Assembly: GCF_964204645.1 (NCBI RefSeq)
Contig: NC_134030.1
Coordinates: forward strand, 14,818,110 to 14,882,109
From: Tubulanus polymorphus
Taxonomy: Eukaryota > Animalia > Nemertea
DNA length: 64,000 nucleotides
Reading direction: 5' to 3'
Below, piece by piece: positions 12,805 to 52,548 of the stretch (its first letter is position 1; each line of letters opens with the position of its first letter). Position numbers and translations under genes: made by a program. The notes below the pieces were generated by a model. That model searched no databases, was not told where the DNA came from, and saw only the letters and a program-made list of their open reading frames with translations.

Positions 12805-12820
12805 TTATATAATTAAAAAA

Positions 12821-13255: not shown

Positions 13256-13273
13256 TTATTTAGAAAAAAAATA

Positions 13274-13696: not shown

Positions 13697-13713
13697 TTAT
13701 TTAGCAAAAATAA

Positions 13714-14641: not shown

Positions 14642-14647
14642 CTTATT

Positions 14648-15013
14648 TTAATCCATTAATAATAATTTAGATTTAGTTTCAATGACTTTATGATTTGACT
14701 TATTTTCTGGTATGACAGGTTTATCATCGGAATCATCTTTATCATCAGATTTGAATTTTGATTTATATATTACACCGGATAATATAATAACTGTTACTAA
14801 TCCAATTGTAATATATAGTTTATAATTACTTCCAGCATTAGAAGAATCAGATGGATTATTATTTGAATCAATATCAGATAATTTCTGTGATTCATTTATA
14901 TAAGTAAATTTCTTTTTCTTAGCTTTTTTTAATTCTGAAGATCTTTTGCCTAATTCTCTTGCCCATTTAATTTGTTTCTCAGATCTAGCCTTTTTCTTAA
15001 CTCCATCACTCAT
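14648..15013 (-). CDS. Polinton basic single-TM protein (121 aa)
   Basis: Intact ORF with one hydrophobic helix. Homologue at 52549-52910. Confidence 0.65.
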   Translation of the reverse strand: MSDGVKKKARSEKQIKWARELGKRSSELKKAKKKKFTYINESQKLSDIDSNNNPSDSSNAGSNYKLYITIGLVTVIILSGVIYKSKFKSDDKDDSDDKPVIPENKSNHKVIETKSKLLLMD

Positions 15014-15132: not shown

Positions 15133-15989
15133 GGTTTCATTATCTCTCTTCTCCACGATTTTCATTATAACGTTATGCGTTCCCCTTTCAAACAAACCAA
15201 ACACCCAAGTATCTTGGTGTCCGCTGCCTTTGTTGTATTTTCTTCTCTTCCCAAACAACGATTCATCTATCTCGGTAATTGTTTCGTCAACATCGCCTCT
15301 AACTTGTATCGGAGATTTCTCCACAGATCTGTGGCATATTTCCCTGTATTTGTCGAACCATTCCATTATGGTTTTCTGATTGATATGTGGTAATAATTTC
15401 TCTGCTTGGTAAACTTGGAGGTCTATTGCAAATGTGTATAGTATCATCATTAGATCCTTAAGAGGAAGTTTGGAGCCCTGAAAAAAGGCAATACATTTCT
15501 TTAGAAAAAGTGTTTTATATGGCCCGAAAATGATATTGCCATCTTTTTACATACAATTGGCTGACGCGCATTTTCATTGAGTTAAAATAGCCGGCTTGGC
15601 TTAAATGATGGTAAAATGTGTCGCAAAATGTTTCTGCGTTACAAAAAGACGTAAGTAACCAGTAGACTCACCTTGAAAATCGATTCGTGGCGAACAGATT
15701 TCACGGAATAACACAAGCCACATCTTCATACAAAACCATCGAGACAATCATTCTTTACTTTCAATTCCATTTGAACTTTACTACAGTTAATACACTCGAA
15801 GTTGTAACTTATAAGACCAAGAGACTTCATATAGCCAATTGCATCCATTTCAAGTGACCGAATTACTTCATAAATGCCAGGATTTTCGTCCATCTCTCTG
15901 TACTTTTGGCACTTTTTTACCCAGATAGGCCTCTGATGTCTCGATCTTATCTTCATAGATCTTACCAATAATAATGACCGCGTTGCCAT
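15133..15989 (-). pseudogene. Merlin (IS1595/IS1016-like) transposase, copy A: 2 exons, premature stop, C-terminus deleted
   Basis: Zn ribbon CINC..WRC, EIDESLFGKRRKYNKG and WVFG. A TGG>TGA change at 15726 relative to copy B. Fused to Polinton sequence at about 15132. Confidence 0.85.
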
Positions 15990-18900: not shown

Positions 18901-19118
18901 GAAACAAGCGGCCAAACAAGCGGTTTGGCTATCAATCTTTTAGCCTCGCTATAATGCATCGATGAGTGGTGATGAAAGAGCCAGAGTATCTATCAATATT
19001 TCATCTCAAAATCATTAATTTTAAATAAACACCTCTAGCTTTTAAAAAAAACTCTAAGTTTGATTATTTGATAAATGTAGCTTATCAGTTGGTGTCAATG
19101 TATTTGTGTGATTTTATA
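15360..19118 (+). repeat. Near-identical direct duplication of 36315-40050
   Basis: ORF translations are the same in both copies; only a handful of substitutions and homopolymer indels are visible by eye. Confidence 0.95.
17114..18698 (+). pseudogene. DUF3987/YfjI-like (MCM-clade AAA+) ATPase gene, copy A, last exon lost
   Basis: Walker A EVGGGKS, TTAGI, Walker B AGDEG, LNKLWGG, IQP and DGFWDRFLF. Phase-compatible GT-AG exons at about 17114-18005, 18103-18332 and 18536-18698. Confidence 0.7.
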
Positions 19119-20410
19119 TCAGGGTAATCCACGCACACACACAGCCCCTCGATCCCAGCCACTTTATATCAGGGGTAATCCACGCAAAAACACAGCCCCT
19201 CAATCCCAGCCACCTTATTCAAGGGTAATCCATGCAAACACGCAGCCCCTCGATCCCAGCCACTTTATTCAAGGGTAATCCACGCAAATACACAGCCCTC
19301 GATCCCAGCCACATTATATCAGGGTAATCCACGCACACACACAGCCCCTCGATCCCAGCCACATTATATCAGGGTAATCCACGCACACACGCAGCCCCTC
19401 GATCCCAGCCACATTATATCAGGGTAATCCACGCACACACGCAGCCCCTCGACCCCAGCCACATTATATTAGGGTAATCCACGCACACACGCAGCCCCTC
19501 GATCCCAGCCACATTATATCAGGGTAATCCACGCACACACCCAGCCCCTCGATCCCAGCCACCTTATTCAAGGGTAATCCACGCAAACACGCAGCCCCTC
19601 GATCCCAGCCACATTATATAAGGATAATCCACGCACACACACAGCCCCTCGATCCCAGCCACATTATATCAGGGTAATCCGCGCAAACACACAGCCCCTC
19701 GATCCCAGCCACTTTATATCAGGGTAATCCGCGCAAACACGCAGCCCCTCGATCCCAGCCACTTTATATCAGGGGTAATCCACGCACACACACAGCCCCT
19801 CGATCCCAGCCACTTTATATCAGGGTAATCCACGCACACACCCAGCCCCTCGATCGCAGCCACTATCCACGCACACACACAGCCCCTCGATCCCAGCCAC
19901 TTTATATCAGGGTAATCCGCGCAAAAACACAGCCCCTCGATCCCAGCCACCTTATTCAAGGGTAATCCACGCACACACGCGGCCCCTCGATCCCAGCCAC
20001 ATTATATCAGGGTAATCCACGCACACACACAGCCCCTCGATCCCAGCCACATTATATCAGGGTAATCCGCGCAAACACACAGCCCCTCGATCCCAGCCAC
20101 TTTATATCAGGGTAATCCGCGCAAACACGCAGCCCCTCGATCCCAGCCACTTTATATCAGGGGTAATCCACGCACACACACAGCCCCTCGATCCCAGCCA
20201 CTTTATATCAGGGTAATCCACGCACACACCCAGCCCCTCGATCGCAGCCACTATCCACGCACACACACAGCCCCTCGATCCCAGCCACTTTATATCAGGG
20301 TAATCCGCGCAAAAACACAGCCCCTCGATCCCAGCCACCTTATTCAAGGGTAATCCACGCACACACGCGGCCCCTCGATCCGAGCCACTTTATATAATCC
20401 ACGCACATAC
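19115..20410. repeat. 50-bp minisatellite (about 26 copies) with a 388-bp higher-order duplication
   Basis: Unit AGGGTAATCCACGCACACACACAGCCCCTCGATCCCAGCCACTTTATATC. The identical ORFs 19714-19974 and 20102-20362 show the 388-bp period. Confidence 0.95.
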
Positions 20411-20657
20411 CCAAATTTTAAAATGCTGAGGTTAACGCTTCAACTGCTTTTCTGACAATTTTATCCTCTTCTCTCAGCCATGATCAGATGGATATGAAGT
20501 TTGAAACGTCGGACACAAACAGTTTTTATTAAATGAGACTCAAAGTAGTTAATTTAATTACAATTAGAAAATTGAGATTACATCTCATACATTATCGGTT
20601 ACTATCCGTTGAATTTTAATCACCAATGTACATTTTGAAAATGATATATTTATAGTC

Positions 20658-21210
20658 TCAATGCCGCACAATGTCTTTCATAATCGGCCAAAAAATATCC
20701 CCATTCGGTCTACCAAACCTATACCGATACACAAACTCATCCAAGTAGATACCAATTCTACCATGAAGAACTCCTTTCATCTTCTTGATTCTGCCTTTAG
20801 CAATCCCCCATAGGCCTTCAATGCCGTTTGTGCAGACTCCATCACTCGACTTGAATTCCAAAGAATGATTTACTACACCATGCTGATAATTATCACGGAG
20901 ACTCCTGTAAGCAGCCCACCCATCACTATATATGGTTGAACCATCCATCACATGTTTATGAATGATTGGCAAAAGGGTTTCATTATCTCTCTTCTCCACG
21001 ATTTTCATTAAAACGTTACGCGTTCCCCTTTCAAACAAACCAAACACCCAAGTATCTTGGTGTCCGCTGCCTTTGTTGTATTTTCTTCTTTTCCCAAACA
21101 ACGATTCATCTATCTCGGTAATTGTTTCGTCAACATCGCCTCTAACTTGTATCGGAGATTTCTCCACAGATCTGTGGCATATTTCCCTGTATTTGTCGAA
21201 CCATTCCATT
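20658..21210 (-). pseudogene. Merlin transposase copy B, catalytic C-terminal part (gene split by the P element)
   Basis: EIDES, YSDGWAAY, VNHS, TNGIEGLW and YLDEFVYR are the IS1595/Merlin DDE motifs. The gene continues at 36315-36944. Confidence 0.9.
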
Positions 21211-22129
21211 CACAGGGGTTTGGCGATGGGCTTGGATCGTGTTTTCTATGTGGTTGCTTGGATCGAGAAATCGAAAAAATTGAATATTTCCTTTACTCAC
21301 GAACGCTGCTCATCACAAACCCGGAAATGATTAGCGGAAGTATGTGGCAGTGTTGCGTCGAAATTTTACCGCAGGTGCTGTAACATAATTTTCGTTTTTC
21401 ATGAGTTGATCGCTGATAATCGTAATATACATTGAGAAAAATATGAAATGTTTTTCTAAAATACTACCTATCCAGTATCAAACATTCATATATTATCAGT
21501 CGCGTCTGACTATATAAAATCACAAGGGATGAAACGCCTTCAGAGTTGTGCCAGCCAGAAAGTTGGGACAGTCACGTGACTAACGCTTCTAATTTGCATA
21601 TCACTGACTGAATGCGAACCTTTTGTCATCACCGTCGGCGAGATGATGCTCAAGAATTCTGGGGTTTTCAATAGGAATTCAACGGGTGACCAGGCTCGCT
21701 GCTGTAAGCTGACCAAAATGTAGCTGTTTGAAGGAGGGGATTTCAAGGAAAATATCGGTGTTTTACCCTACCATCTGTTTATTAAACTCGAAATTTGCAT
21801 TGAGATAAGCACGTAAATAATCCGTGGGTATATTTAATCACTTCATTTTAGGCCGTTTTGATGTGATATTTGCATTTTTTTTGCGCTTTTGTACAGCGCG
21901 GCATGACGGCATGGCGCCGGTCATTTTCCTTTTCAAAAGTTTCAATGTGTCTGGCCGGGATGCATGAGTGCTCATTTGTTCTGTGCTGATTGTTATCTGC
22001 ATTTGCAATCTCACTGACTGACTCCGAATCAAAGTTTACTTTCCATTTTTGCCTGGTTTTAAACACCACTGACCCTTAAAACCACCCCTGTGCTTTTTAG
22101 CTAGGTTGTTCATTGCATCATTCATCTAG

Positions 22130-22603
22130 AACTCAAGTTTGATTCCATCAAGCAATTGAGCTGAAACTCCAATTTGATTCCATTGCACTATTTTGATCCG
22201 AAACCGCAATTTGATTCCATCACACAATTGAGCTGAAACCCCAATTTGATTCCATCACACAATTGATCTGAAACTCCAATTTGATTCCATCACACAATTG
22301 AGTTGAAACTCCAATTTGATTCCATCAAGCAATTGAGCTGAAACTCCAATTTGATTCCATCACACAATTGCTCTGAAACTCCAATTTGATTCCATTGCAC
22401 TATTTTGATCCGAAACCGCAATTTGATTCCATCACACAATTGATCTGAAACTCCAATTTGAGTCCATTGCACTATTTTGATCTGAAACCGCAAATTGATT
22501 CCATCACACAATTGATCTGAAACTCCAATTTGATTCCATTGCACTATTTTGATCTGAAACCGCAATTTGATTCCATCACACAATTGAGCTGAAACCCCAA
22601 TTT
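22130..22603. repeat. 35/37-bp minisatellite, about 13 copies
   Basis: Unit CCAATTTGATTCCATCACACAATTGAGCTGAAACT. It ends about 10 bp before the Pif1 ATG. Confidence 0.93.
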
Positions 22604-25600
22604 GTGGACAGAATGTTAAATCCTGAGCAACAAAAAGCAGTAGACCTTATTGCAGCAGGTCATTCTATTTGTATTTTGGGTCAAGCAGGTTCTGGAAAAA
22701 GTTTTTGTATACGTAAAGCCGTGACGAAATTGAAAAAACAGTCAAAGAAAGTTGCAGTTTGTGCAACTACTGGTATTGCTTGTTGTCAATTGACAGACCT
22801 TGATGCAGTCACTATACATAGCTGGTCAGGTATCTTAGATGGACGTTTTTCTAAATCTGAGATGAAGAAGAGGCTCATGACAGACGCCCAACTTATCGAT
22901 GTTAAAAATTACATTTCATCAACAGATATTTTGTTCATTTACGAAATTTCAATGCTCAGCGCATATATTTTTGAACTCATCGAGTTCACTTGTCGTACAG
23001 TGCGAGGTTCATCACAGTGGTTTGGTGGTATGCAAGTAGTAGTGAGCGGTGATTTTTTTCAATTACCACCAGTACCAAATCTGGAATACGAAGATGATGG
23101 CCATTATTGCTTTGAAAGTAGTATATTTAATTTTAGTCATGTGATGATTTTGAGTAAGGTTGTTCGTCAAGCTGATGAAGAGTTTATTAATATCATCAAT
23201 GAGGTAACTCGTGGTATTACATCGAAGGAAAGTAATTCCTTTTTAGCAAGTTTAACGCGTCCTTTACCAGAAAATCTAACTGTAACTCATCTATTTGCAA
23301 ACAATTTTAATGTAGAAGTTACAAACCAAATGGAGTTAAGTAAACTTGCCGGTATTGGGAAAATATATGTAGCTACTAGTGAGGAAGGGACATCTGATTC
23401 CCTTAACTCTTTGCCAGCAGTTCATAAGTTACACTTGAAGATCGGTGCGCCAGTTATTTTGATAAGAAATATCAACAAATTTCTTGTCAATGGTTTACAA
23501 GGCTATGTAAAGAGTATGCACCCAGATTTTGTAACAATATTTTTTCCGTCTGTCCATAAAACTGTTGACATCAAACCAGCGGTGTTTTCTGTATTTTCAA
23601 AAAGAAAGCGTGTAAATATTTGCAAGCGATCGCAACTGCCTTTGCGTCTAGCATTTTCATTGACGATACATCGTTGCCAAGGTATGACTTTAGAAGCAGT
23701 TTCTGTTGATTGTCGCAACATACGAACAGCTGGTCAGTTTGGTGTAGCAATCAGTCGTGTAAGAACACCAGATAATCTGCGTGTCCTACATTACGAGCCC
23801 AAAATATGCATCAAACCCCCATCAAGCGTTATAGTTTTTTATGAGGAGCACATAATGGCTTCTGCAGATTTTGTTCATGATCTGTCGTGCTGTGTTTTTG
23901 GTGAAGGTATATGCCCTATTGATGCAATTAGCTTTGATTCGGAATGTCAGTCAGATGAAGATAGTCAATTCGACGAATCCGATTTGCGAGCTATAGATTA
24001 TTTTTTATCAGGTCAAACTGATTGTTTCGATAGCAGTCGATCCTCAACTTACCCTTCTACAATCGACCCTTGTCATGTTGTAAAACAATTGAAATTTTCG
24101 GACGCAGTTGTTGATAATCAGATCGACCAAAATAGAGTTCTCGATGATATCTCATCGTCTATCGATTTGAATCTTTACATCTCACATATCTGGTCGAAAT
24201 TGGATTACTTATATGAGTTACATGTATCTTCAACCATGATCCAGCAACCAAAAAACCAGGTGCAATACATATCAGCATTTCATTCATTTGTGACTAGTCA
24301 AGAATTCCTGACTTACTCCGAGCAATTGTTGAAGCGAAAACCCTTAACTCCGATTGAGATTAAAGTGTGTTCAAGAATCTGTTTCAAACTATTATCCAAG
24401 TATCTGGAATTTCGTACTTCAAGCATAGATAGAATTGTGATTGTAAATAGTTCAGCAACTGTTGAGTCTAGTGCCCACGGAAAAGTTCGTTACGTGGGTG
24501 GTTATTGTATTTTTTCCGTTTCTCGCTATTTCCAAAAACTCGTCCGTTTTCATTTAGCAAAGTTGGACGAATGTTTTTATGTAGCAAAGTTGAAATTTGA
24601 TTTGTTACAATCACTCAGAGTCGCTCAGGCTATGCTTGAAGAGAGTGTTTATCAAGAAACACTTGTTGAAACTTTGCGTCGGCAAAATTCGTTTGAAGGT
24701 CTAACGAATATATCAGATAAAGCTTTCGAATTTTTCCTCGAACTGGAGAAACTTCGTATTCGATATCATAATGTAAATAATCAGGCATATGAGACTCTGT
24801 TGGAAGATGCTCTCAATTATGTTGTGAGGGACTCTGGTATCAAGGCGAAGTGGTTTAGTTTGTTTGAGATAACTAGTCATATTCCTGAAGTTACGGAATC
24901 ATCTGGAATTCGTGATTTGGTCGATAAACTTTTTCTTATTTCCACTGCAATTTTAGATATTTTTCGAGATGTCTGTGTGAAGTATATGAAAGTTGGGAAT
25001 GCTCAATTCCGTAAAGATCTGTTACAGTATATCGGCCAAAAAAAGACTCAAGCCCATAGACGTCAAATTCTTATAAGAAAAGAGAAGCAATCGCAGCAGC
25101 AGTCCGGTATTATTACTATGACTACTATCAGAAATAATCCCACTACCATACATTCAATCATTCAGTATGCATTATCTAATCAATCATTTAAATTTGATGG
25201 TTTCTGCAAAGCTGACCTAATGATATTATGTCGCTGCTACGGTATAAAATCAGTTTCTAAACTGAATAAGGTTGGCCTTGTAAACGCGCTGTTGGAAACC
25301 CTGTGTGAACTAGAATCCATGCCGAACCCCGAATTTCTCGTCCAACGTAGTATCTCTAGCAGCAAGGTGGTATTACAGCAACAGCAACACAGCATTGTTG
25401 CTGTTGCTGCTGATACTGCTGCTGATGGTATTGAAGGTGCTTCTAGTTCGAAGGATTCTTCGGGATCAGAACAGAGAGGTCTATTAGCTCTGCCCATTGC
25501 AACATCTGCAGACTGCCATAGCTCTATAAAGACTTCTTCAGGGAAGCGAAGTGTTCGTAGTGGAACGCGGGGTAAATCCGTGACCCGGAAAAAACCAAAA

Positions 25601-25810
25601 ACAGAACCTGTTTATACGTGCCCTATCTGTAAATTGGAATGGTCACTTTCTAGAGAGTTCAGTGATTACTGGCTGGAATGTGGAAACTGTTTGAAATGGA
25701 TAGATCCTAAATGTACTGGCCTTATTGTAGGCAGCCCTGAATGGTTACATATTACATCCGATCCTAACATTGAATGGCATTGTCAGTTATGTAAACCATC
25801 GACTTCATAG
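22604..25810 (+). CDS. pif1: Pif1-family (SF1B) helicase with C-terminal helical region, SAP-like motif and PHD finger (likely ATG at 22613)
   Basis: GQAGSGKS, ATTGIA..TIHSW, YEISM (variant Walker B), GDFFQLPPV, VRQ, LVNG, QLPLRLAFSLTIHRCQGMTL, QFGVAISRV; KADLMILCRCYGI..NKVGLV; CPIC...WLECGNCLKWIDPKC...WHCQLC. It is transposon cargo, not shown to be the host orthologue. Confidence 0.88.
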   Translation: MDRMLNPEQQKAVDLIAAGHSICILGQAGSGKSFCIRKAVTKLKKQSKKVAVCATTGIACCQLTDLDAVTIHSWSGILDGRFSKSEMKKRLMTDAQLIDVKNYISSTDILFIYEISMLSAYIFELIEFTCRTVRGSSQWFGGMQVVVSGDFFQLPPVPNLEYEDDGHYCFESSIFNFSHVMILSKVVRQADEEFINIINEVTRGITSKESNSFLASLTRPLPENLTVTHLFANNFNVEVTNQMELSKLAGIGKIYVATSEEGTSDSLNSLPAVHKLHLKIGAPVILIRNINKFLVNGLQGYVKSMHPDFVTIFFPSVHKTVDIKPAVFSVFSKRKRVNICKRSQLPLRLAFSLTIHRCQGMTLEAVSVDCRNIRTAGQFGVAISRVRTPDNLRVLHYEPKICIKPPSSVIVFYEEHIMASADFVHDLSCCVFGEGICPIDAISFDSECQSDEDSQFDESDLRAIDYFLSGQTDCFDSSRSSTYPSTIDPCHVVKQLKFSDAVVDNQIDQNRVLDDISSSIDLNLYISHIWSKLDYLYELHVSSTMIQQPKNQVQYISAFHSFVTSQEFLTYSEQLLKRKPLTPIEIKVCSRICFKLLSKYLEFRTSSIDRIVIVNSSATVESSAHGKVRYVGGYCIFSVSRYFQKLVRFHLAKLDECFYVAKLKFDLLQSLRVAQAMLEESVYQETLVETLRRQNSFEGLTNISDKAFEFFLELEKLRIRYHNVNNQAYETLLEDALNYVVRDSGIKAKWFSLFEITSHIPEVTESSGIRDLVDKLFLISTAILDIFRDVCVKYMKVGNAQFRKDLLQYIGQKKTQAHRRQILIRKEKQSQQQSGIITMTTIRNNPTTIHSIIQYALSNQSFKFDGFCKADLMILCRCYGIKSVSKLNKVGLVNALLETLCELESMPNPEFLVQRSISSSKVVLQQQQHSIVAVAADTAADGIEGASSSKDSSGSEQRGLLALPIATSADCHSSIKTSSGKRSVRSGTRGKSVTRKKPKTEPVYTCPICKLEWSLSREFSDYWLECGNCLKWIDPKCTGLIVGSPEWLHITSDPNIEWHCQLCKPSTS

Positions 25811-26149
25811 ATAGAAATTCATTTTTGAGTCCATGGTTGAATTTCATAAGACTTGGCTCTAAGCCAGTTTTATTGTACACAAATACTAGTGTTGCATAGC
25901 AACACTGAATGTATTGATTTTATCTCAGTGCAAATGTAAGACATTATTGGACAGCTGTTGGTGCAAGGGGGGCTTTGCACAAGATCATATAAGATCATTG
26001 ATGATATCAGTGTATGAAAAAAAACAGATCAAACAGTTCTCTACCACAAACACTGGTATCATCAATGATCCTCTGTCATCTTGTGACAGGCCCCAGGTGC
26101 TGGTTGCATAGTCACGGTATAGATACCCGACAAGTAAGACTTAGTTCTA

Positions 26150-26323
26150 GGGGATCATTTATTTATTACGTACGCATAAAATATGAATTTTTTAACCCAA
26201 GGCCCTCCCCTCCGCCATGCAAAATCGGCTATTTTTTCATATACATTAAGCATTACAGTGACATGCAAATTTGCACTTACCCCTTCCCCTCCCCTAATGC
26301 GTACGTAATAAATGAATTAACCC
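26150..26323. mobile_element. About 170-bp MITE (GGGG-ATCATT..TTACGTACGCA TIRs; Zator/Harbinger-like). Further copies at 27389-27605, 32099-32252, 32719-32887, 33190-33350 and 34251-34410
   Basis: Repeated about 25-bp TIRs with a shared interior, often flanked by TA/TAA-like sequence. The superfamily is uncertain. Confidence 0.7.
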
Positions 26324-26386
26324 TATAGCCAATCTACTTAAGACCACTTATGCACTTTTGGGTTTAAGCCATGACTGCAACTGGCT

Positions 26387-26575
26387 CCTCGTACGATTAA
26401 TATTTATATTTACACTGAACCTCATTCGTACGACTAATTATCTGAACCTCATTCATACGACTAATAATCTGAACCTCATTCGTACGATTAATATTTATAT
26501 TTACACTGAACCTCATTCGTACGGCTAATAATCTGAACCTCATTCGTACGACTAATATTTATATTTACACTGAAC
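26387..26575. repeat. Short tandem repeat (TGAACCTCATTCGTACGACTAAT with variable spacer)
   Basis: About 5-6 units between the convergent Pif1 and transposase stop codons. Confidence 0.8.
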
Positions 26576-26590
26576 TACAGTCACTAGATC

Positions 26591-29500
26591 TTAAATTCTG
26601 CATCCAACACGCCTAGGATTCAATGCTGAATCTTTTCGAACGATAGGGTAATCAGTGCCCGCTGCATCAGCATTCGCTTTTCTTGAAATGCACGGATTAC
26701 ACAGGATGATTGATGTGGTAGACGCACAATACTGACCATAGTTTGGGTTATCGTTTGCGCCATTAAACTTTGCTCTTTGTTGGCAAAACCAATTTTCCGC
26801 TACGTCACTATTTATTATATTGTGGTTTATAAACCCACCAGCCTCTGTTTCTAGACGACAAATATCAATGAATCCGAGACAGCAGCTGTCCAAATCGTAG
26901 CGCGTTTGTTGTGACATAACATTGGTCTTGATGGATTTTGCCTTGCGCGGTTTTATTTCTGCTGATTCCCATTTTTTTAAAAATGCATGGGCTTCCAACA
27001 TTTTACACAATCTGTTGTCGGATGTACTCCTAATCGGACGTGGATCGCGAAATAATGATACCAGTTTGCTGGTAGCGTTAAGAAATTCGATGGTGCCCAA
27101 CAATTTCTCGCTTTCAATCTGATCGAGGGTTTTTTGGAACATCTGCAATGCAAGAAGTAGTTTTATTAAAGTGGGAATAAACTTGATCAAATTTTTTTGA
27201 TGTGTCATTCACAAACGGATCTATTTGAAAATGTAAAGATCAGTTTATAATGACATCAACAAAATATGAGTTTTTCCCATGATAAGCGATCATTCACTTA
27301 ATAAACACACATAAAATTTGAATTTTCCCACGACGCAAATTCAGAAATTTTGTACTATTGTTTGAGCATTATACACAATTGCACTGAAGGGGTCATAAAT
27401 TTATTACGTACGCATTAGGGGAGGGGAGGGGAGGGAAGGGGAGGGTAAGTGCAATTGTGTATTATTGCTTTAAGTACAGAAAAAATGGCAGATTTTGCGT
27501 TGCTGGGAGTTAATATTTTATGCGTGCTTGATGTGACAGATCCTTAGCCCCTTCCCTCCCCTCCCCTCCCCTCCCCTAATGCGTACGTATTAAAGTAATG
27601 ACCCCTAATGAGATGTTGCATCAAAGTTGGTTGAAGAATTTCATGTATCATTGTCATCATATTTTTTGGATTTTATTCTATGTACATGAATCACAAAATA
27701 AGAAGCATGGCGCCTTACTCCGGTTCCTGAACTTCGCTGAAAAAGCTGAAACACTGAAACGCTGAATCGCTGAAATAAAAACGCTGAAATTTCAGGGAAT
27801 TTCCGAAAAACGCCGAAATTTCAGGGAATTCCCGAAAAACGCTGAAATCGTGCTAGGTACCGACAATACACGTTTTGAAATAATATCCGGGCCGGTATCC
27901 GCTGCCGAGTCCTGAACCGTCTTTTAGTCTCCACCTTCGGTTACAGAGACATGCATGGGCAGTATGTGTGGAGTATACTTCTAGAGGGCCACTTGTTGAA
28001 CAAATTAATTCGCTTGAAATCCGGATTTTTAATGCATACAGGCAGCATGATGAGGAAAACCCTTTCACAAACCGTGCAAGCCAACTTAAACACTATGCTC
28101 AATATTCCAAGAACATGGTTTACTTCTATCGTTCATGTATAAAACAGGATTATAAGCAACTTTTCTTTTGTCAACACGTTGATGGGCGACGGACTATGGT
28201 ATTCTCTGAAGGAGGTAAATTAAATTTGACAGCTAGTTATATAAATGATGCAGCTTTTGGACAAAAGGGATCTAACTAAATGTCTTTTTAATTCACCGTG
28301 GAATGGAATGGATTGACGCCAATGACATGCAGTAGGCCCCTACTTATAGGTCATACTAATTAGCGTCAACCAATTAATCTAAATCGGGCAAACCATTCAA
28401 CAACTGTAATTTATTTGCTGTGTTGTGATAATAATAGGTTTTTTTTTTTTTAATGACATACCAACTGTTAGAAAAATGTACCGATTCTTATTTTTAGACT
28501 ACTACGGTATCTATAAAAGGAGGAGTCATAGATAAAGTTGATTTGCTCAGCTGGACACACTTCTTGTCAAGTACATCATCTCAAGTATTGGGTGTTTTGT
28601 AAGTTTGATTTCAGTATTTATTTACTAAGTGCTGTTCCCTCGGGCCTCAGTGCTTTCAAACTAGGCCCACCCCATAGGCTATATCTCCAGAGTGTGTTAG
28701 CCACTATTCTTTTATTTCCTACTTTAAATGCACTTTTTTCTATTTTTAGACTCGGGCTAAGAATGTGCAAATTTGAGATACTGAGAAATCAGATGGCACT
28801 AGTTAACTTGAACTGCGAAATTTGCAGCAGGATAGCTGAACGACACAATTTTTAAAAACAAAATGGCTATTCGAATGCTATTTCAGTGATAACTTGATTC
28901 AACCAGAGAGAAATAAGTCAATTGGGGATGTACAGTACACCCACTTTACTTCCCCGTTTTCCTGGTACCAAATATTTTATCTTAAGCTAAGCAATATTCT
29001 AAGGTATGCTAGTGAATTTCATTAGAATATAAAGCAATGGAACCAGAATTCAAGCCCGAGTTAAGCGAACTATTGATTCTGATATAATGTAAGAACTGAT
29101 TTCTTTTGTGTATTCTTATAATGTGTTAAGTATTATTTTAAGCTGTTAAATAATATAATTAGACAAACGTCAAATTATTGGATCTTTCTTGTTGACTCGT
29201 TTAATTTTGTGAGTTTAGAGTTCCAGTCAATCCACATTGTGCAGTGCCTAGCCTTCATCTAGTACTAAAGCCAAGCCTGTGTATGGGAAAACGTTGTTCG
29301 ACTCTCATAAGCCAGACAAATAAAAACTTGCAATACATTGCAGATAGAAGTCTCCAGCAAGTAGACAGAGAAAGTAAACCAGGTTTTACCCCGTACCCTA
29401 CCCGGCATCTTCACCTGTCAAGGGATTCGAACCCACTACACTAAAGCTGTTCTCCGAACCGCTTGACCTCGAGTCGTTACTAGCCGACCAGAATCAGGTC

Positions 29501-32500
29501 GGGCCAATCACAGCGCTTGTTACAAACGACATTTGGCATCTATGGAATTTCCCGGTAAATGGACCAATCAGCGAACACGTAGCGAAAACGGAAGTATTGT
29601 CGCGTGTTGATATATGACGTCATTCGCAAAAACGCCGGTAATGAAATCGCGCGTCGTGAGGCCAGGGGGCAGGTGGAAGCGAGTTTGGGAGCGATACTGG
29701 TCTCCTGGCAAGCGAGGATGCCTACCCGGGAACGAAAGACACTCCAAGACTCCTTCCTTGAAGAGATTGTAGAAATATGGCACCCAATCGTAGTAATGCT
29801 AAGTACAGTATACTATGACGGTTGAACCTTTATTCACACCAAAATAGAATCAAAGTAGTCATAAGTTCCATGATAGCACTTAATTTGGGTTATCAGGTTC
29901 AGCCTTACTAGCTGTACTTTCATTCAGCTACTACTTTTGTATGAGACTTGGCAATGATAAGTTGGAAGAAATCACCAAATATAAGAAAAAATATTGAGAA
30001 TTAATATTACTGTAATTAAGAATTTATTCAAATGAAGTGATAATTTCATTGTTAGATCGTACCGGTATATGCGCATAAAACAAAAAACACATCTAACAAT
30101 CCACGCAATCCGCAATCGATCAAGTCGAACATGACGACGACCTCAAGGCATGTCTCTGTAACCGAAGGTAGAGTCTAAAAGACGGTTCAGGACTCGGCAG
30201 CGGACACCGGCCCGGAAAGAATTTCAAAACGTGTATTGTCGGTACCTAGCACGATTTCAGCGTTTTTCGGGAATTCCCTGAAATTTCGGCGTTTTTCGGA
30301 AATTCCCTGAAATTTCAGCGTTTTTATTTCAGCGTTTCAGCTTTTCAGTGTTTCAGCTTTTTCAGCGAAGTTCAGGAACCGGCCTTACTCGGACATGGCC
30401 AACTTGGACAAAAAAAGAAATTTTCCAATTCCTTACTCGGACTTCGCTTACCTCGAACTAAATTTGCCAATCCCAGTTTGTGCGTGTTAGACAAGGTTTT
30501 ACTGTACATTGTATGTATTTTTCCATGATGATGATCCATGAAATTATACGGCCAAGATTACCAGTACTCACTTTCATCAGATGTAACATATCGGAATCCA
30601 GAACTTGTTCCGCAAGGTAGTTCCTCATTTTTTCATTTTGATCTGGATTGATGTGTTTTTCTGTCAGTTTTCGGTGGATCCGTAGGGAATTGTTGTTAGT
30701 ATCCCACTCATGGGCTGCTGCCCAGTGTTTCCATAGTATATCTCGATTGCCGACGTTCAGAAGTCTAGTGTGGAATTTTTGATGACCACTTTTCAGAACA
30801 TTGTTGCGGATCTTTTTAAACAGATGCTAGGATAGATAAATAACACCGTTATTAGTACTTGAAATCCCCTCAGGTGAGAGAGCAGTGAAAACTGGTAAGT
30901 ACCCTAGTAAATAACTTGTTTCATTTATCCAGATAAAAGTTAATTTGTTTTGTTTTTTCTTTAATTTACAGCTCTTACCGATGGGTCCATTAGAAGAGGA
31001 AGTGGCTTATGTCCGAAAGGATTTAAAGTCGTAAACTTTCCCTCGATAGGGAGCATCATTTTCATCAATGTGCGATTACATTGCGCTCCATCCATACACA
31101 TGTATGTCACCTGAAAAGTTACCATACAGCTTTTCAATATTTTTATACATTTACCGGGTGATATTTTAGGATGTATTATAATCTACCTCGAAACCCCAAT
31201 TCCCTAGTTCGCAAATCATTTCAGATAAGATCATATAGAGTTCAGCAGCACTAGCTTGATCAGTTGGATAACTAGCAATTGGAAATCGGAAGCCAGTGTT
31301 TCCCATGAATGTGAGCTGCAGGACGTGGTTTGCAATTTTAGGCTCGTACTTTCCTACAATGGTAAAAAACTATATTTTACAGAATATGGTGGTGGATTGG
31401 ACACGCAGCAGTTGGTGTGTTTGAGGATTTAAGCAGAAGAAATTTTAATGGGAAACATTTCAGGGAATTACCTGCCAGGAGCGCCCTTAAATGATTTCCA
31501 GCATCGCCCATATCAACGAACCCTTGAAGTATAGCGCGGCCATTTTTGTAAGTAATTTGTAGGTCTTCCTATTTAAAAAAAATGAAATGTAAACAAGTGG
31601 TATCATTTTTAACCCATTAGCACTCAGGAATTGCACTATGTTCTGTCTATAACTCCTCAGAAAATTCAAGGGAAAATCCAAATTCATCACGATACAGAAT
31701 AGCTCATTATGACATTGATTGAATATTCCTGTGGTATTTCTTTTGATAGATTTTGTCTATTCAATATTTTTGTCAATGTTTCATTTTAGGCGTGGATCTT
31801 GATTCAGTACCTGTATTGACATTTCATCGAAGATGAGACCGCCACGTTTTGCTTCATCCGGTAGACGTAATCGTTCGCTTTCTTGAGAAAGCCCCATCAA
31901 CAGAACGGTGTTGTATCCAGTGCCATGGCTAACTTGGCTTTTATAATAATGTAACAGCCGTCCGGATGGCAGTCGGAACATGCTACTTGCTTTCATGTCG
32001 GCAAACGCTTTAGGCGACTGACACCAAAGTCTGAGACAAAACGCGATAAGTCTGAAATGTAAACAAGATTGATTGTAAATAGAAATAAGTTTCGCTTTGG
32101 GATCATTCATTTATTACGTAAACATAAAATTTGACTTTTTCAACCCCCTCTGTACACAAATCGGCCATTTTTTCATGTATATTTAGCATTGCAGTACGCA
32201 ATTGCACTTACCCCTCCCCCTCCTCTAGTGCGTACGTAATAAATGAATGACCACTATTGCAGCTATCAATCTTGATCTATGTAGTCCCACAGTAGTCGAT
32301 TAAAGTCATACTTAAAACATTGACAAAATTAGTTTCAAACTGTTTTAAGAATCTAATTTGACCGGCTACTGCGGCACTGCACCGATTTTGTCTACGCACT
32401 GTACCTTAGACAGTCAAATAGATTACAAAATCAGATCGTCTAGGCATATATAAAAAATGATTGTCTAAGGTACAGGCAGCAGATTGGTACCTGCATATAT

Positions 32501-35208
32501 GCTATCCTTGCTTGCCAGGGTTTAATTGCCTGCTGATCAAGATCATGCCCACACTAACTGTGGCCGCAGATCATTCATCAGTCTATTACACAGTCCAAGA
32601 TTTCTTAGGGAGACAAATTGCCGCTGAGCGGCCACCAGTCTATATACTTAGTCAGTCGAATGCATCCTGCAACTGACGTTTATGGCAAACTGGCTTCTGA
32701 TTTCAAATTGCTAATTTAGGGTTAATTCATTTATTACGTACGCATTAGGGGAGGGGAAGGGGTAAGTGCAAATTTGCATGTCACTGTAATGCTCAATGTA
32801 TATGTAAAAATAGCCGATTTTGCATACATGGGGGGGTGGGGTTGAAAAATTCAAATTTTATGCGTACGTAATAAATGAATGATCCCCAACTAATCAAGCT
32901 AGTGCGGAACTTTATATGATCTTATGAGAGGGATAATTTGCAAACTATCAAATTGGCACAATACAAACAATGTATCTGATTGGCTAGATATATAGACTTG
33001 TGGTAGTCAAGTGGCAACTTTTCCGCTCAAGAAATCGGTGCCATGTAAAAGATTTATGAAGGAACTATGGCCACGGTTAATGTTGGCATGAATGAGCTTT
33101 GGCGGGAGGTAATCAAACCCTGGCAAGTGAGGATTTTTAGGTCATTATTGAGAAAGGATACTAATTTTTTAAAGCCCACTTAGGGCTAGGGGTCATTCAT
33201 TATTACGTACACATTAGGGGAGGGGGAGGGGTCAGTGCAATTGCGTACTGTAATGCTTAATTTATATGAATCAATGGCCGATTTTGCGTACAGAGGGGGA
33301 AGGGGGTTGAAGAATGTAAATTGTATGCGTACGTAATAAATGAATGATCTCTAGCGGTTGAATGAACTTACTTCGGGTGCCATTTCATCTGTCTCTTGTC
33401 TTGGCATGATAAACTGTCATTTTGGACACGTAAGAACAATTTCAGTGCTTCATTGTCAGGAACTTTTTCCAAATAGTCGTCCAGCAACTTGATCAGGTCA
33501 TCGCTATCTTTTTCGCTTAATTCCAGTAAGTCTTTTTTTAAGCATTTTGAGTGTTCGTAGTATTTACAATATTTACACGTTGAACATTTTGTTCCGACGT
33601 CCGAATGAATTATGCGACAATTAATTGATCTTAATCTGGTTTTATCAATCATGCTTTTATAAGAAGTGTCAGTCGATGTACATTTTTTACAAGAAGGTAG
33701 AAATCCATTACAAATTTTCAAAAGTTTTATTTGATTTAAAATCAAATCTAACGAATTTTCAGTGTCAACCTGATCATTGATTTTGAACTCTATTAGATTG
33801 ATAGTCCGATGCAAAACCGTCAAAGTTACTTTGAAATCCGACTGAATGTTGATTTCTTTGCAGACTTTGGCTGCATTCGTTGAATTTCCGCAACAAAAAG
33901 TTCCGATTTTCATATTGGTGACATTTTTCTCGAAGAGAAAATATCCATCAGGGAGCTCCACTGATTGCATTCGAAAATCACGTTTCTCATTTATCAAAAG
34001 CGATGGCGATTGTGTCTGCATCGTCAGACCAAGAAGATATTTGTACCTTTTTCCATTTTCTCTTAAACGCGCGATTTTAACTTGAGGATAAAGTTCCTTG
34101 ACTTTTTTCGTTAACTTTACTGATGAACATGGAATTAGTTTTAAAATATCTTCGTATTTCAACTTCAAAAAATTGCTTTCTTTACAATTTTTCAGCAACC
34201 CGTAAATTGTAAATACAGAGAAATGGGAAAATGCACAACTATGTATAAATGGGTTCATCATTTATTACGTATGTGTGAGAGCATATTTTGTTACCACAAT
34301 CAATTGCAAAGTTGTAGCTCATAGTGAATATTGAATTTGTAAGATTGTTGAGCATTTCAACCCCTTTCCAAGTGACCCCTAGTTTACATAATGATAAATG
34401 AATGATCCCCAACTGATCAAGCTAGTGCAGCGGAACTTTATATGATCTTTTGCGTGCGAAATAAATGAATGAACCCAAATCATACGCCTACTTGGTTCCA
34501 CAGTTGTGAGATTGACTGAATTGATTGAATGGATATTCATATTTTCGAACAACAATGGAATCCGAGTCGTGTATTATTTGAACCTGCAATAATTTTAAAA
34601 GTATTCGTGCAGGAAAGGAAACCAGCTGAGATAAAACCTGGTATAACAATACGCCCTCACTTGCCAGGGTTAGATTACCTGCTGATGAAGATCATGTGAA
34701 CAGAAACGTGGCAAACACTGGTTTTCGATTTCGAATTGCTAGTTATCCAACTGATAAAACTAATTGGAAATTGGCTCGATGCCTGGTGGCTGCAAAGCGC
34801 TAACTTTTCCTTACAACTTAGGCCGTATAGTGGATTAATGAATGAACTGCAGCCACGGTTTGTGTTGGCATGAGCTTTAACAGCAGCAGGTGATCAAATC
34901 CTGGTAAGTGAGGATGTGGCATTGTTCTTATTGTCACTGGCTTTATAGAATTTATAATTAGTTTTTATTTTAGCTCTGATGCATATGAAAATGTTACCAT
35001 TCCAGGGGCAGGGTTAACAAATTTATAGAGTAATCTTTTTCAATTCTTGAATCTTTTCCAACTGATTTCGATTTAAGTTTAGCCCTCAATTTGTAAAACC
35101 TGAGCCCCAGGCATAGGTCTATTTAATCATCAGACAGGTGGATGCGAAATCTTACCATTTCACGATTTGTGAATCACTAATGCAATTGCTGTTCTCCTTA
35201 TTGTCCAT
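26591..35208 (-). CDS. P-element/THAP9-family transposase, multi-exon
   Basis: Phase-compatible GT-AG exons at about 33372-34199, 31811-32051, 31472-31568, 31187-31353, 30979-31110, 30572-30826 and 26591-27142, with a tentative first coding exon at about 35156-35208. Motifs LRLWCQSPKAF..LPSGRLL, IFDEMSIQ, GFVDMG, CMDGAQCN, DPSHLFKKIRNN, KMRNYLAEQV and SDVAENWFCQQR..NDNP. Confidence 0.88.
27721..30381. mobile_element. Non-autonomous long-TIR element (Mutator/Foldback-like) in the last transposase intron
   Basis: About 235-bp TIRs (27721-27955 and 30148-30381) containing short CGCTGAAA repeats. 9-bp TSD GCCTTACTC at 27712-27720 and 30382-30390. Confidence 0.85.
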
Positions 35209-36314
35209 TTTTAACCGTGGTGATCATTGATGGTACCTGATGATGAATGGATCATGTCAAAATAAGCTGTGATCATATAGAATTTGGTCATTGAGATTGA
35301 TGGCCTGTCTTCTTTATAGATTACATTACATTACAAACTTGTGTCTTACAATAAAAATGAAAATAAAGATATGAGAATTCTTGTGTTAAATCTTTTGATA
35401 AAACTTCAATGTATATAGGCCTACAGATCAAATGAGGATGCTGAAAGGTTGAGGAGTGGATTTCTCCATATCAAAGTTCAGGCCTACACGCTTGGTAGCA
35501 TGCTAATGTAATGCCCATGTGCTGAAACTTGGTAAAGTTGACTCGTCGTTTTCAAATGTTCATGGACTTGCCTCGGACACCGATTACTAGTGAAGTTTGA
35601 ACTTGTTGGATACAACCGACCACCTCGTGCGCTGCGTCATTCCAAAATCCCGTTTCGAATCCAACGGATTATTCAAAAGTGGCGCATGCGCAAAAATAAA
35701 AATTAAAATCCCGAAATAGATAAAATAGACCGTCAGGTAGCGACTCCTGGCGTTACAATTGTAGTTACGTGTTCTCGAACGTAGGAGAGATCGTCTGAAG
35801 TATCAACGATGAAAACTATAACACGGAAAATATTTGAGAATAACTTTCATTCAAATGCAATTCTAAATCTATGAATTATACAATTGATCATAATTTATTC
35901 TTATTAAGTTATTAATTTCATATGAATCATAATTTGACAATGAATATCGGTCTGTGAATGTGTTGACTTTTCATGTTGAAGTTTTAAACATGATGACGTC
36001 ATCAGGATGTCACGTGACTGTCCCAACTTTCTGGCTGAAAATTTAAGTACGGCGGAGGCCTGGCGTTACATCCCTTGTGATTTTATATATAGTAAAGCGT
36101 GACGACCGTCTGATACTGACCCTTATCAGCCAATTGTTTATCGGAACTTAATAGCGGATAAATATACAACATTAACACAAGGTATTTCTGTGATATTTTG
36201 AATTTATTTGCAGTTCATATTTAGCGCCATTCTCGCGAGATTATTAACAACCCGGAAGTAAAATCCAAGCAACCACATAGAAAACACGATCCAAGCCCAT
36301 CGCCAACCCCTGTG

Positions 36315-36944
36315 ATTCCATTATGGTTTTCTGATTGATATGTGGTAATAATTTCTCTGCTTGGTAAACTTGGAGGTCTGTTGCAAATGTGTATAGTATC
36401 ATCATTAGATCCTTAAGAGGAAGTTTGGAGCCCTGAAAAAAGGCAATACATTTCTTTAGAAAAAGTGTTTTATATGGCCCGAAAATGATATTGCCATCTT
36501 TTTACATACAATTGGCTGACGCGCATTTTCATTGAGTTAAAATAGCCGGCTTGGCTTAAATGATTGTAAAATGTGTCGCAAAATGTCTCTGCGTTACAAA
36601 AAGACGTAAGTAACCAGTAGACTCACCTTGAAAATCGATTCGTGGCGAACAGATTTCACGGAATAACACAAGCCACATCTCCATACAAAACCATCGAGAC
36701 AATCATTCTTTACTTTCAATTCCATTTGAACTTTACTACAGTTAATACACTCGAAGTTGTAACTTATAAGACCAAGAGACTTCATATAGCCAATTGCATC
36801 CATTTCAAGTGACCGAATTACTTCATAAATGCCAGGATTTTCGTCCATCTCTCTGTACTTTTGGCACTTTTTTACCCAGATAGGCCTCTGATGTCTCGAT
36901 CTTATCTTCATAGATCTTACCAATAATAATGACCGCGTTGCCAT
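36315..36944 (-). pseudogene. Merlin transposase copy B, N-terminal exons (36627-36944 and 36315-36432)
   Basis: CINC..WRCGLC..SVRHESIFK|GSKLPL with a GT-AG intron. It joins in frame to 20658-21210 once the P element and one TSD are removed. Confidence 0.88.
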
Positions 36945-38066
36945 TAACAGCCATGTATTAATTAATTTTGAAAGAGCCAGTTCAAGTCCCGTAGCATTGG
37001 ATATAGTGTTCCGCCCAAAATTACATTATAAAAAATGAATATTTAAGTTACATAGACTTTTTAAACCAATTTGGTTTATAATAAAAGTGGCCATAAAATC
37101 AGACGCCCACACCTAGTCCCTCAATTCCAGCCACTTTAAATAAGGGTAATCCCCTTAGACAAACAGTCCATCGATTCTCACGAGAGCGTATTTTCTCGCC
37201 CGATCGTGACGATCTCTCGGGTTAGACAAAATTTATACCCCGATAAGAGCGGGCACGCGTAGCGATCAAACCGTAACTCTGACAACGTACGCCGGTTCAA
37301 TAAAAGTGATATCAACAATGCATCCTATTGGTTGATAAAATGGATCGCGGGCGGACGAGCGAATTAAAATAATCGGCCGAAAATATCAAACAATCGCCGG
37401 GCGATTGAGTCGGCCGACGACAAAGCTCTCCATTCTCATAAATATGTTTGCTTTTTTATCAAATCGTGAATTCGGCACTGAGATCAACATCATGAATTCT
37501 GTAAATGGTACAGACATTGATGGAATTCCGTATAAAATACATTATAGGCCTATTCAAAATTTTGATGTTTTCTTTCCATAGTTTCCAAGTGTGTGATATA
37601 TGTCCGAAATATAGTTGTTTTTTATATAGTTTATTGTACAAAAACCTCAACTTTTTTATTATTATTATTATTATTATCTTTATTTCCTGTAAATTATAAC
37701 AAGATATACAAAGTAAATGCAATGTAAACTTTGATTTATTATTGTGGTCTTCTAGCTGCTAATCACATTTTTAACTGGAAATTTGGTACTGTAAAAATTA
37801 TTTGGGCGAAAAATACCCTAACTTCCTATTTTGTGATTGCCCCGCCCGGGAAACCGGATGTTTTTTGGTGTGGCCTAATTTTGCAGTGGTTTTCATTTCA
37901 TTTCAAATATGAAAGCCCAAGGCAATTTGCATGCCGTCGTTAAGGTTAAACGATCACTGTCTGAGAGAGATGCTGAACTGTTTTCCATAGCAACGAAACA
38001 ACGGTTACAACAATTGTTAGTCATCGGCTCATTACTTGTCAAGTTTTCGTCTTCTCTGCTGTCAAG

Positions 38067-40373
38067 ATGAGAGAAATCGTCCGTATTTGTCAGTCTGATG
38101 TGCAGCGAGTGTATCGCAAGTGTTGGAAAGAGAAGGTACCATGGAAAGATATTCTGCATCCTGATGTTTTTGAGTGGATCGAATGTTTCGCAATAGCCAA
38201 AAGTGCACCGATCAACATCACCGTGGGCGGAATTTTATCCGTGGTATCGAGTTTAGCTGGACCAAAATGTCGAATAGTGACTGCAGATATTACAACGCCT
38301 CTAAATACGTATATAATGAATATCTGCGAGGTTGGAGGGGGTAAATCGCGTGTTTACGACGAAGTGTTGTACGCTGCTGACCAGGAGCTGCAGCAAAAAG
38401 GTGAAAAAATTTCACTTCTTCTAGAAAAATATACAACCGCTGGAATTCACACGCACCAAAGTAAAAATAAAGGATACGGGATCATTGCTGGCGATGAAGG
38501 CATTCGAATCTTACAAGATATTAATTCAAAGCAACAACGTGGCGAGTCGGAACGTGCCTTACTCAACAAACTTTGGGGGGGGGGGGGGCCATGGCGATAC
38601 AGCCTGTCTCTCATCAGGCAAGAGAGGTTTTGAAAATACGTGTATTTGCATGAATATATTGATACAGCCTGGACCACTTCTTGATGAATTATCTATTGGT
38701 GCTGATGGCTTCTGGGACAGATTCCTGTTTTTGTGCTCGAAGCCACACATATTTACCGCGGAGGAAACAAAAGAATTCTTCGACCGTCTTAAAAGATCAA
38801 GCGCCAGCTTTAAAGATTTTGTGAGGTCAGTGTATGATACGTTTAGACAAGGACAGACAATGAAGCTTAGTCCAGATGCTGAGATAATCTTTGGTGCCAT
38901 CAGGAACGACTACGCCTCTTATGTAAATCAGTTATACGCAACTGAATCCGATGATGATGGTAAGTTAAATATTAAAATTCTTCAGAAATTTTGCTAAATT
39001 GATACTATTGAGGGGGTTTCTCATAAATCTAATACTAATGTTTTGTCTTATTACAGATGAAAAAGAAAACTCGGCTGAAAGCATTCCAATTGTTACCAGC
39101 AAAGATACAATCCACATACTAAGATTATCTGGAATAATAAATGTATTGGAGAAAACTTTGGTGAGTCTACTAGACAAAGAAAATCAAATTTCGACGGACA
39201 GTCTTATCACAATTGAAGCTCGGCACGTCAGGGCTGCACGGCAACTGTACCACTCAATGTCAATCGTACGACAAATTATGCTTCAAGTAAGTATAGATAA
39301 TCGTGTGCTTTCAATTTCTAGTAAACAATAGGACCTTCATCAAATTTTTTCCATAGGACAGGTGGTATCACGTTCGTGTGGTGTTGACAATCGACAATCG
39401 AAATGACCATTATTGTCGATGATATTTATCGTAACTTCGACAAATACAGTACAGGGTTTTGGCTTTTAACAATTATGTTATCTTTTCAGGCTGCTAAAAG
39501 ATGCGAGACACAGGTTGCTAGAAAAGGTCCTTCACCAAAGACGTTTGGAGAAAAGGTGATCGCATTAGTTTGTCGCTCAAATGGACCTGTGATATCAGTC
39601 AGGACTATACAAAAGAGCATCGGACATGGGTGCACAACATTGCACATTCAAAGTAAGGTTGTTCAGAATCGAATGTTTCATAAGTCTATTTGATTCTTAC
39701 AAGTATCCCGGTCCCTACGGCTAAAAAGAAATAGTTTGATTTAAAATTTGTGGTAAAATTTGTAATCAGTGCATTCTATATTGTTGGCTTGATCGTGATT
39801 TTTAAAATAATGTACAGGGTAGATAGGGTCAACTTATAATCTCAGCAGAAATGAGAAACAAGCGGCCAAACAAGCGGTTTGGCTATCAATCTTTTAGCCT
39901 CGCTATAATGCATCGATGAGTGGTGATGAAAGAGCCAGAGTATCTATCAATATTTCATCTCAAAATCATTAATTTGAAATAAACACCTCTAGCTTTTAAA
40001 AAAAACTCTAAGTTTGATTATTTGATAAATGTAGCTTATCAGTTGGTGTCAATGTATTTGTGTGATTTTAATTGTAGGTTCTTTGGAGGAATTGGAGAGA
40101 AACGGTTTCGGTGCAATGAAAACGCTGAAAGCAGCCTCGGCCGTCGGAAGAAAGTCTACCTACTTCTTTAAACCGCACCCATCAACACTTGTCGAGAATA
40201 ATCGACAAATAAAAAGATCAGAATGCGCTTTCGACCGATATACCGCCAACTTTTATTCAGTCAATGATATGACTGATACATCAAAGTTGATGTGCAGAAT
40301 GCACCATCCTGACAACGAATTACTTCAGGATCTTCTAACCCAAGCGGACGTTTCTGAAAGCCAATCTGAGTAG
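38067..40373 (+). CDS. DUF3987/YfjI-like AAA+ ATPase with winged-helix-like C-terminus, copy B, 4 exons; +1 frameshift in a poly-G run
   Basis: Same exons as copy A plus a last exon 40078-40373 (TTGTAG|GT TCT TTG, phase compatible). G14 at about 38575-38588 versus the in-frame G13 in copy A. Confidence 0.7.
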
Positions 40374-42894: not shown

Positions 42895-43052
42895 TAAGTA
42901 ATAGGGAATGTGTTGTTCTAGATCAAAGGTCGAAAGGTCGAGTGAGTAAAAAATGAAAAATAAATTCTCGCACACTCGAATTTATTTTTCAGTTTTTAAT
43001 CACTCGACCTCTCAACCTTTAATCTAGAACAACACATTCCCTTTTATTCTTA
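42895..43052. other. About 150-bp imperfect palindrome (foldback) upstream of the Polinton genes
   Basis: GGGAATGTGTTGTTCTAGAT... pairs with ...ATCTAGAACAACACATTCCC around a small loop. The right arm resembles 57634-57690. Confidence 0.85.
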
Positions 43053-43107
43053 AAATATTAATCTAATAATTTCTAAAATCAATTTTAATAAGAAATATGT
43101 TATTAAA

Positions 43108-52545: not shown

Positions 52546-52548
52546 TAA

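Follow-up and report, generated by a model that had tools for sequence, protein, structure and literature searches.

A two-gene P-superfamily transposon of Tubulanus polymorphus in which a transposase core is paired with a Pif1 helicase carrying a predicted P-transposase C-terminal domain

Analysis of a 64,000-nucleotide stretch of the nemertean Tubulanus polymorphus genome (assembly GCF_964204645.1, contig NC_134030.1, forward-strand positions 14,818,110 to 14,882,109; hereafter the window) identified a P-superfamily element of 15.1 kb with exactly located ends (positions 21211–36314) that encodes a transposase and a Pif1 helicase on opposite strands. The pairing of these two genes is real, ancient and widespread: they transpose jointly between shared terminal inverted repeats (TIRs) with target-site duplications (TSDs) of 7–8 bp, the domains are divided between them, and they have long been inherited together under purifying selection. 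The best explanation, and in our judgement a probable one, is an ancient cut-and-paste lineage with a split transposase. The first gene would contribute a winged-helix-like N-terminus, a helix-turn-helix (HTH) domain, an RNase H domain with D, D and E and a GTP-binding insertion, ending soon after the catalytic E, and the second, always on the opposite strand, would contribute a Pif1 helicase together with the missing P-transposase C-terminal domain (CTD), a SAP-like motif and a PHD-like finger.

The transposase gene consists of seven minus-strand exons (Table 1) with 778 codons and no internal stop. Each of the six introns has GT-AG borders and keeps the phase, and a short-intron family of 50% identity has them at the same positions. 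The catalytic motifs D, D, D-x-x-H and E are represented by DEM, DG, DPSH and DVAE. The sole PDB match of a profile of 62 relatives was the Drosophila P transposase (6P5A_A), the alignment pairing D230, D303, the D-x-x-H motif and E531. The fold was modelled from a naturally intronless relative in Pinctada (L022:13526-15895), and this model matched 6PE2/6P5A (E 2e-20, TM 0.8 by target); a single-sequence PDB search with the Pinctada transposase gave no match, whereas the profile search did. The transposase core is P-type DDE with the GTP-binding insertion and D-x-x-H. A THAP domain was present in none of the 62 clade transposases, three of which gave a weak RFX match, and also the N-terminus in the window is weakly RFX/winged-helix-like. 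The clade transposases with the E motif end mostly 55–95 amino acids (aa) past the catalytic E, while the fly protein continues into its C-terminal domain; the clade is therefore without the P-transposase CTD. A profile of the middle domain of the helicase protein matched 0 of 76 clade transposases.

The partner gene is a single open reading frame (ORF) of 1065 codons without a stop, from an ATG at 22613 to 25810, with the helicase beginning at residue 1. Pfam matches were obtained to the Pif1 core (PF05970, E 9e-28) and the 2B domain (PF21530, E 1.5e-8), and no Rep family matched the protein. In a tree of helicase domains constructed without verified Helitrons, the partner grouped beside cellular eukaryotic PIF1 with weak support (0.67). 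The helicase of the window copy is probably dead, judging from its sequence, because Walker B reads IYEISM instead of the IDEISM that the two sister copies share with the divergent family, the D-to-Y change being private to this copy. The profile of the SAP-like region had the Ku70 SAP domain as its top PDB match, and the Pfam SAP match was weak (4 of 28 members, best E 0.018). The C4HC3 ligands of the PHD finger are complete in relatives, molluscan ones among them (PF00628, E 3e-4), and in the families of this genome the His is replaced by Asp or Asn.

Between the helicase and the SAP-like motif lies the region that was identified as the CTD. It includes the motifs Y[VI][GA]G[YW] and GLT-x-I-S-D, and outside the helicase its motifs are better conserved than any other part, with R/Y/G, L, D and F near invariant among 65 sequences. 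Tnp_P_element_C (PF12596) was matched by one partner member (E 8.5e-5). The middle domain was modelled with a pLDDT of 90.6, and its residues 131–326 (window 24455–25042) aligned by VIA-align to residues 617–734 of 6P5A chain B with a Z of 11.0 and an rmsd of 2.9 Å over 117 of 118 residues, the only match with Z ≥ 8 among 48,161 chains. In the atlas, the two top rows were the corresponding part of complete THAP-P transposases and of THAP9_C proteins. Foldseek against PDB did not find the CTD, while VIA-align and the atlas did; a feature-based atlas search gave no match, and a homolog search by the middle domain alone returned nothing although the whole-length partner query succeeded. The PF12596 scan of the genome, without a match anywhere, is uninformative. 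KolX was considered as the identity of the domain and rejected, as it is a P2X7 ballast zinc fold. According to the model, the middle domain of the partner is the P-transposase CTD missing from the first gene, and across the clade the pattern is complementary, the domain being lost from the one gene and found on the other.

The element is bounded by 53-bp TIRs differing by one 1-nt indel, CACAGGGG starting at 21211 and CCCTGTG closing at 36314, and by ATTCCATT on both sides. A paralog of the flanks at 15133–19116, 99.8% identical to 20976–21210 plus 36315–40070, has a single ATTCCATT at 15360 and represents the empty site; the window element is a recent insertion. The window copy reaches 15.1 kb because of a nested 2,663-bp insertion with TIRs beginning CCGGTTCC, internal 29-bp repeats and no long ORF, which is missing from the 12,501-bp sister copy, and the core element is thus about 12.4 kb. 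The subterminal inverted-repeat arms are candidate transposase binding sites. A preliminary description of the sequence had given the exact boundaries with the 8-bp TSD and empty site, the phase-compatible exons with D/D/E and the D..H motif, and the uninterrupted 1,065-aa Pif1 ORF opposite the transposase, all of which agree with the present results. Its "giant" element does span 15.1 kb, but partly through nesting; the THAP domain that it gave as normal for P transposases was not found, the N-terminus being weakly RFX/winged-helix-like instead; and its "chromatin-reading" helicase does have a PHD-like finger, though the replaced His ligand in the families of this genome weakens that reading.

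Two sister copies in the same genome share the left end and both genes with the window element. They are about 1% divergent with nonsynonymous divergence (dN) near synonymous divergence (dS), as expected of young, decaying insertions, and the helicase gene is frameshifted in both, with Walker B intact. The ends are mobile, as is seen from two short forms with TSDs of their own: a deletion derivative of 555 bp (TSD GACAATGA), and a set of 40 or more elements, each about 780 bp long and sharing the 27-bp tips, of which one was read (TSD TATTGAAG). In the non-autonomous 780-bp family, for example at C10:7959804-7960587, internal inverted arms have about 90% similarity to the right end of the element. 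Two divergent families on C4 and C8 begin with CACAGG, have both genes in convergent orientation and are about 50% identical to the window element in these genes; more transposase–helicase pairs are present on C5, C9 and C17. Between the window and C4 elements, dN was 0.38–0.58 in transposase exons, helicase and middle domain, and dS was about 3 or saturated (dN/dS about 0.15–0.2); with dN well below dS, both genes are therefore under purifying selection. On C9 (7342449-7350877), a distant family member has been rearranged into a large inverted duplication, with a gag-like ORF and a polymerase B ORF of 1339 aa beside it.

Homologs covering the whole length of the partner were found in Pecten, Pinctada, Mercenaria, Argopecten, Glandiceps, Ptychodera and two Branchiostoma species, and in dozens more clusters. 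Outside loci were ascertained from the helicase side, and a transposase of the present clade lay within a few kb of the helicase in all nine that had enough flank, two contigs being too short. Complete elements with TIRs and TSDs were delimited in Pecten, Pinctada and Glandiceps, and the transposase adjoins the helicase also in Mercenaria, Ptychodera, both Branchiostoma species and two ENA contigs. The flanking DNA retrieved for Mercenaria, Ptychodera, each Branchiostoma species and the ENA contig yielded no TIRs. In total, seven two-gene elements and two non-autonomous ones have TIRs starting with CA and TSDs of 7–8 bp. The genes are always on opposite strands, mostly convergent, but head-to-head in two ENA contigs, and in Pecten and Mercenaria (L021:9134-25114, L023:10001-18231) the transposase lies unannotated and antisense in an intron of the helicase gene. 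The helicase motifs are intact in the relatives. Transposase distances correlated with helicase distances in the Mantel test (rho 0.60, p 0.0008; with close kin dropped, rho 0.46, p 0.04) and with CTD distances (rho 0.68, p 0.0002).

The two-gene P lineage proposed in the preliminary description is hence strongly supported, as both genes occur in the same TIR/TSD units in seven elements from four genomes and show co-divergence and purifying selection. It had named copies without Pif1 and a nested Pif1 with its own termini as observations that would speak against the proposal; both genes were found together in TIR/TSD-bounded units, and no separate termini were shown for Pif1. The suggested co-phylogeny and dN/dS comparisons came out in its favour. 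The helicase would, in its proposal, help target choice or gap repair; the CTD was overlooked there. Since the helicase protein carries the CTD of the transposase, it probably forms a structural part of the transpososome and is more than a loosely associated helper.

By its core and ends the element belongs to the P superfamily, and it falls outside the canonical THAP-CTD architecture. Further, biochemical traits of the superfamily are the use of GTP as a cofactor and a cleavage staggered by 17 nt. With the Drosophila P element and THAP9 (6P5A, 6PE2) it shares the CA...TG termini, the 7–8-bp TSD, the HTH, the split RNase H with D/D/E, D-x-x-H, the GTP-binding insertion and the CTD fold. It differs from both in having a winged-helix-like N-terminus in place of THAP and the CTD on a second, opposite-strand gene, fused to Pif1, SAP-like and PHD-like parts. 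The two-gene elements are 7.7–16 kb long with TIRs of 53–605 bp, while the Drosophila P element is 2.9 kb. A PHD finger can occur on the second subunit of RAG-like transposons. These transposons (RAG1L and RAG2L; PMC7204232) likewise have two convergent genes in a TIR element and a related RNase H fold, but the kelch propeller of RAG2 is unrelated to RAG1, whereas here the second gene holds a piece of the transposase plus a motor. AcademH/AcademHP and KolobokH are cut-and-paste transposons with RecQ helicases (PMC9587614, PMC10045372), and thus also DDE transposons with a helicase of their own, on the complementary strand in Kolobok-1_CCri. Unlike these, the present elements have a P-type fold, a Pif1 helicase of superfamily 1B (SF1B) and not RecQ of superfamily 2, and a TSD of 7–8 bp versus 9–10 bp in AcademH; in the literature consulted, no transposase domain is reported on the AcademH and KolobokH helicases, unlike on the Pif1 partner. 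The helicase domain is of the Pif1 family as in the RepHel of Helitrons and Helentrons (PMC8788227), but the partner is without the HUH Rep domain, and the element has TIRs and TSDs. Also IS21 combines a transposase with a dedicated ATPase partner (IstA/IstB; PMC11208146), but it is bacterial with an AAA+ ATPase and serves as an analogy only. In the literature searched, with Repbase and Dfam outside the search, neither a P element with Pif1 nor a split P transposase was found; it is conceivable, although we rather doubt it, that a catalogue already lists such families with a note on the helicase, and quite unlikely that the CTD split has been described.

By analogy with the fly complex, the CTD of the partner would probably complete the transpososome in trans and thereby hold a 5'-to-3' helicase on the DNA ends. 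The partner CTD would occupy the place of the Drosophila CTD, which in the fly transpososome holds on to both the target DNA and the single-stranded, looped-out end of the transposon (PMC7776569). For the motor we tentatively prefer a role after strand transfer, in which the helicase would load on the single-stranded end, remove the complex and make the DNA accessible to repair synthesis by the host, both at the target gaps and at the empty donor site, where templated repair could restore a copy. Melting of the ends before cleavage, or tracking to forks or chromatin targets via SAP/PHD, are both possible but somewhat doubtful roles.

Several observations weigh against the split transposase. 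The Z of 11 for an all-helical domain is inside the warning range of the tool and can occur by chance, yet coverage, motif, Pfam and atlas all point the same way. All copies examined in this genome are damaged in one or both genes, and host relatedness explains part of the Mantel correlation. The middle-domain profile also matched, convergently and 1–5 kb off, nine further P-type transposase loci showing no helicase match, counts that are lower bounds for loci known by their coordinates (C7:12765480/12767570, C3:14262927/14261244, C2:10545666/10540308, C1:18514060/18512097, C5:14178894/14180712, C8:4051623/4049640, C6:18197526/18195084, C12:11353300/11351049 and C12:9438294/9439092). Because some loci show a CTD-like match without a helicase match, the helicase may, on these sequence matches, be dispensable in the wider group, and the nine loci possibly represent a wider class of split P elements to which Pif1 was added in one branch.

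Pif1-family helicases stimulate repair synthesis, and the partner could, in line with the preliminary description, be an independent accessory that raises copy number separately through gap repair or insertion guidance, its CTD being vestigial or self-serving, while the CTD-less transposase acts alone. The partner has DNA and chromatin modules of its own (SAP-like and PHD-like), and P breaks in the fly are repaired by homologous recombination or non-homologous end joining with a host helicase (PMC7776569). This explanation is nevertheless unlikely, as a free helper has no evident use for a CTD, the CTD motifs are the best conserved outside the helicase, and the loss of the CTD from the first gene and its presence on the second are complementary across the clade. 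That the CTD of the partner would instead bind and restrain the transpososome, as a repressor or as a disassembly factor that limits damage, and that transcription from opposite strands would add mutual silencing, would be in line with the constant opposite orientation, which in Pecten and Mercenaria goes as far as antisense nesting within an intron, and with the truncated repressor encoded by fly P elements (PMC7776569). Some active families would, however, be expected to have lost a pure repressor, whereas the pair was kept in 9/9 outside loci (ascertained from the helicase side) with helicase motifs intact in relatives, and we consider regulation highly improbable. Chance nesting of a Helitron fragment or a captured host PIF1 gene within an ordinary P element could be suggested by the many nested elements of the window and by Pif1 being typical of Helitrons (PMC8788227). 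The pair recurs, however, in three phyla outside this genome, in several arrangements within TIRs with TSDs; neither a Rep domain nor separate termini are present, both genes evolve under purifying selection, and a P-specific domain is joined to the helicase; the divergent families in this genome, the bounded Pecten, Pinctada and Glandiceps elements and the CTD fold match refute this origin, and its remaining probability is negligible.

Table 1. Features of the window element and of related elements. Unprefixed positions refer to the window.
Feature	Position	Strand	Remarks
Left TSD	21203..21210	.	8 bp, ATTCCATT; single copy at empty site 15360-15367
Left TIR	21211..21263	+	53 bp, starts CACAGGGG
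Left subterminal inverted-repeat arm	21498..21580	+	pairs with 36009-36103
35/72-bp tandem array	22130..22604	+	immediately 5' of partner gene
Partner gene	22613..25810	+	single exon, 1065 aa; Pif1 helicase, predicted P-transposase CTD, SAP-like, PHD-like
Pif1 (SF1B) helicase domain	22613..23890	+	Walker A 22679, Walker B 22937
Predicted CTD homolog of P-element transposase/THAP9	24455..25042	+	RYVGGY at 24488, GLTNISD at 24698
SAP-like helix-extension-helix motif	25202..25324	+	
PHD-like zinc finger	25619..25792	+	zinc-binding His replaced by Asp in this family
Last transposase exon	26591..27142	-	terminal part of GTP-binding insertion, then catalytic E and stop; not followed by a CTD
Nested insertion, 2,663 bp	27720..30382	.	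last transposase intron; 235-bp TIRs, 7-bp TSD CCTTACT; outside core element
Transposase exon	30572..30826	-	H of D-x-x-H, GTP-binding insertion domain; PF21788 E 0.001
Transposase exon	30979..31110	-	second catalytic D (MDG), D of D-x-x-H
Transposase exon	31187..31353	-	RNase H N-terminal strands; PF21787 E 0.002
Transposase exon	31472..31568	-	small, required for phase
Transposase exon	31811..32051	-	HTH domain, first catalytic D (FDEM)
First recognised transposase exon	33372..34261	-	RFX/winged-helix-like N-terminus, no THAP
Right subterminal inverted-repeat arm	36009..36103	-	
Right TIR	36263..36314	-	
Right TSD	36315..36322	.	ATTCCATT
Sister copy	C6:17558176-17570676		12,501 bp; TSD CTTGGTTC
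Sister copy	C8:7114176-7144627		enlarged by insertions; right TSD not read
Divergent family	C4:15348023-15357122		9.1 kb; about 235-bp TIR, 7-bp TSD; both genes, convergent
Divergent family	C8:6066675-6080260		13.6 kb; 7-bp TSD; both genes, convergent
Pecten element	L021:9134-25114		15,981 bp; 605-bp TIR, 8-bp TSD
Pinctada element			7,718 bp; 408-bp TIR, 8-bp TSD
Glandiceps element			11,371 bp; 299-bp TIR, 7-bp TSD

The insertion target was a Merlin/IS1595-type transposase ORF. The host is a 99.8% identical tandemly duplicated unit (15133–21210 and 36315–40070), the second copy of which is interrupted by the P element, and it includes ORFs for the IS1595/Merlin transposase (20658–21209) and DUF3987 (17114–18043) and a 50-bp tandem array (19113–20395). 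A very high-copy, 160–220-bp repeat resembling miniature inverted-repeat transposable elements is present in introns and intergenic parts of the element (26141–26325, 27388–27608, 32096–32260, 32717–32893 and 33187–33349). The window has also AT-rich (21–25% GC), Polinton-like repeated segments at 1–9600, 12000–15000, 43000–54000 and 58000–64000, in which a Pfam scan alone identified ORFs for type B DNA polymerase and endonuclease VII (e.g. 59243–61174 and 865–2406).

Taken at its widest, the split transposase would define a bilaterian-wide, possibly wider, branch of P elements with an obligate two-subunit, ATP-driven machinery in which the CTD is supplied in trans from a Pif1 motor, perhaps within a wider split-P class without the helicase; we see the chances for and against this as evenly balanced. 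The P transposase has so far been treated as a single six-domain polypeptide, and a natural split makes the role of the CTD testable with separable parts. It also opens to direct testing the disassembly and repair that follow P strand transfer, a step stated as not investigated (PMC7776569). The elements add one more cut-and-paste transposon with a helicase of its own, here with a structural reason for the link, and the "PIF1-like" gene annotations of molluscs, hemichordates and amphioxus may belong neither to host PIF1 nor to Helitrons.

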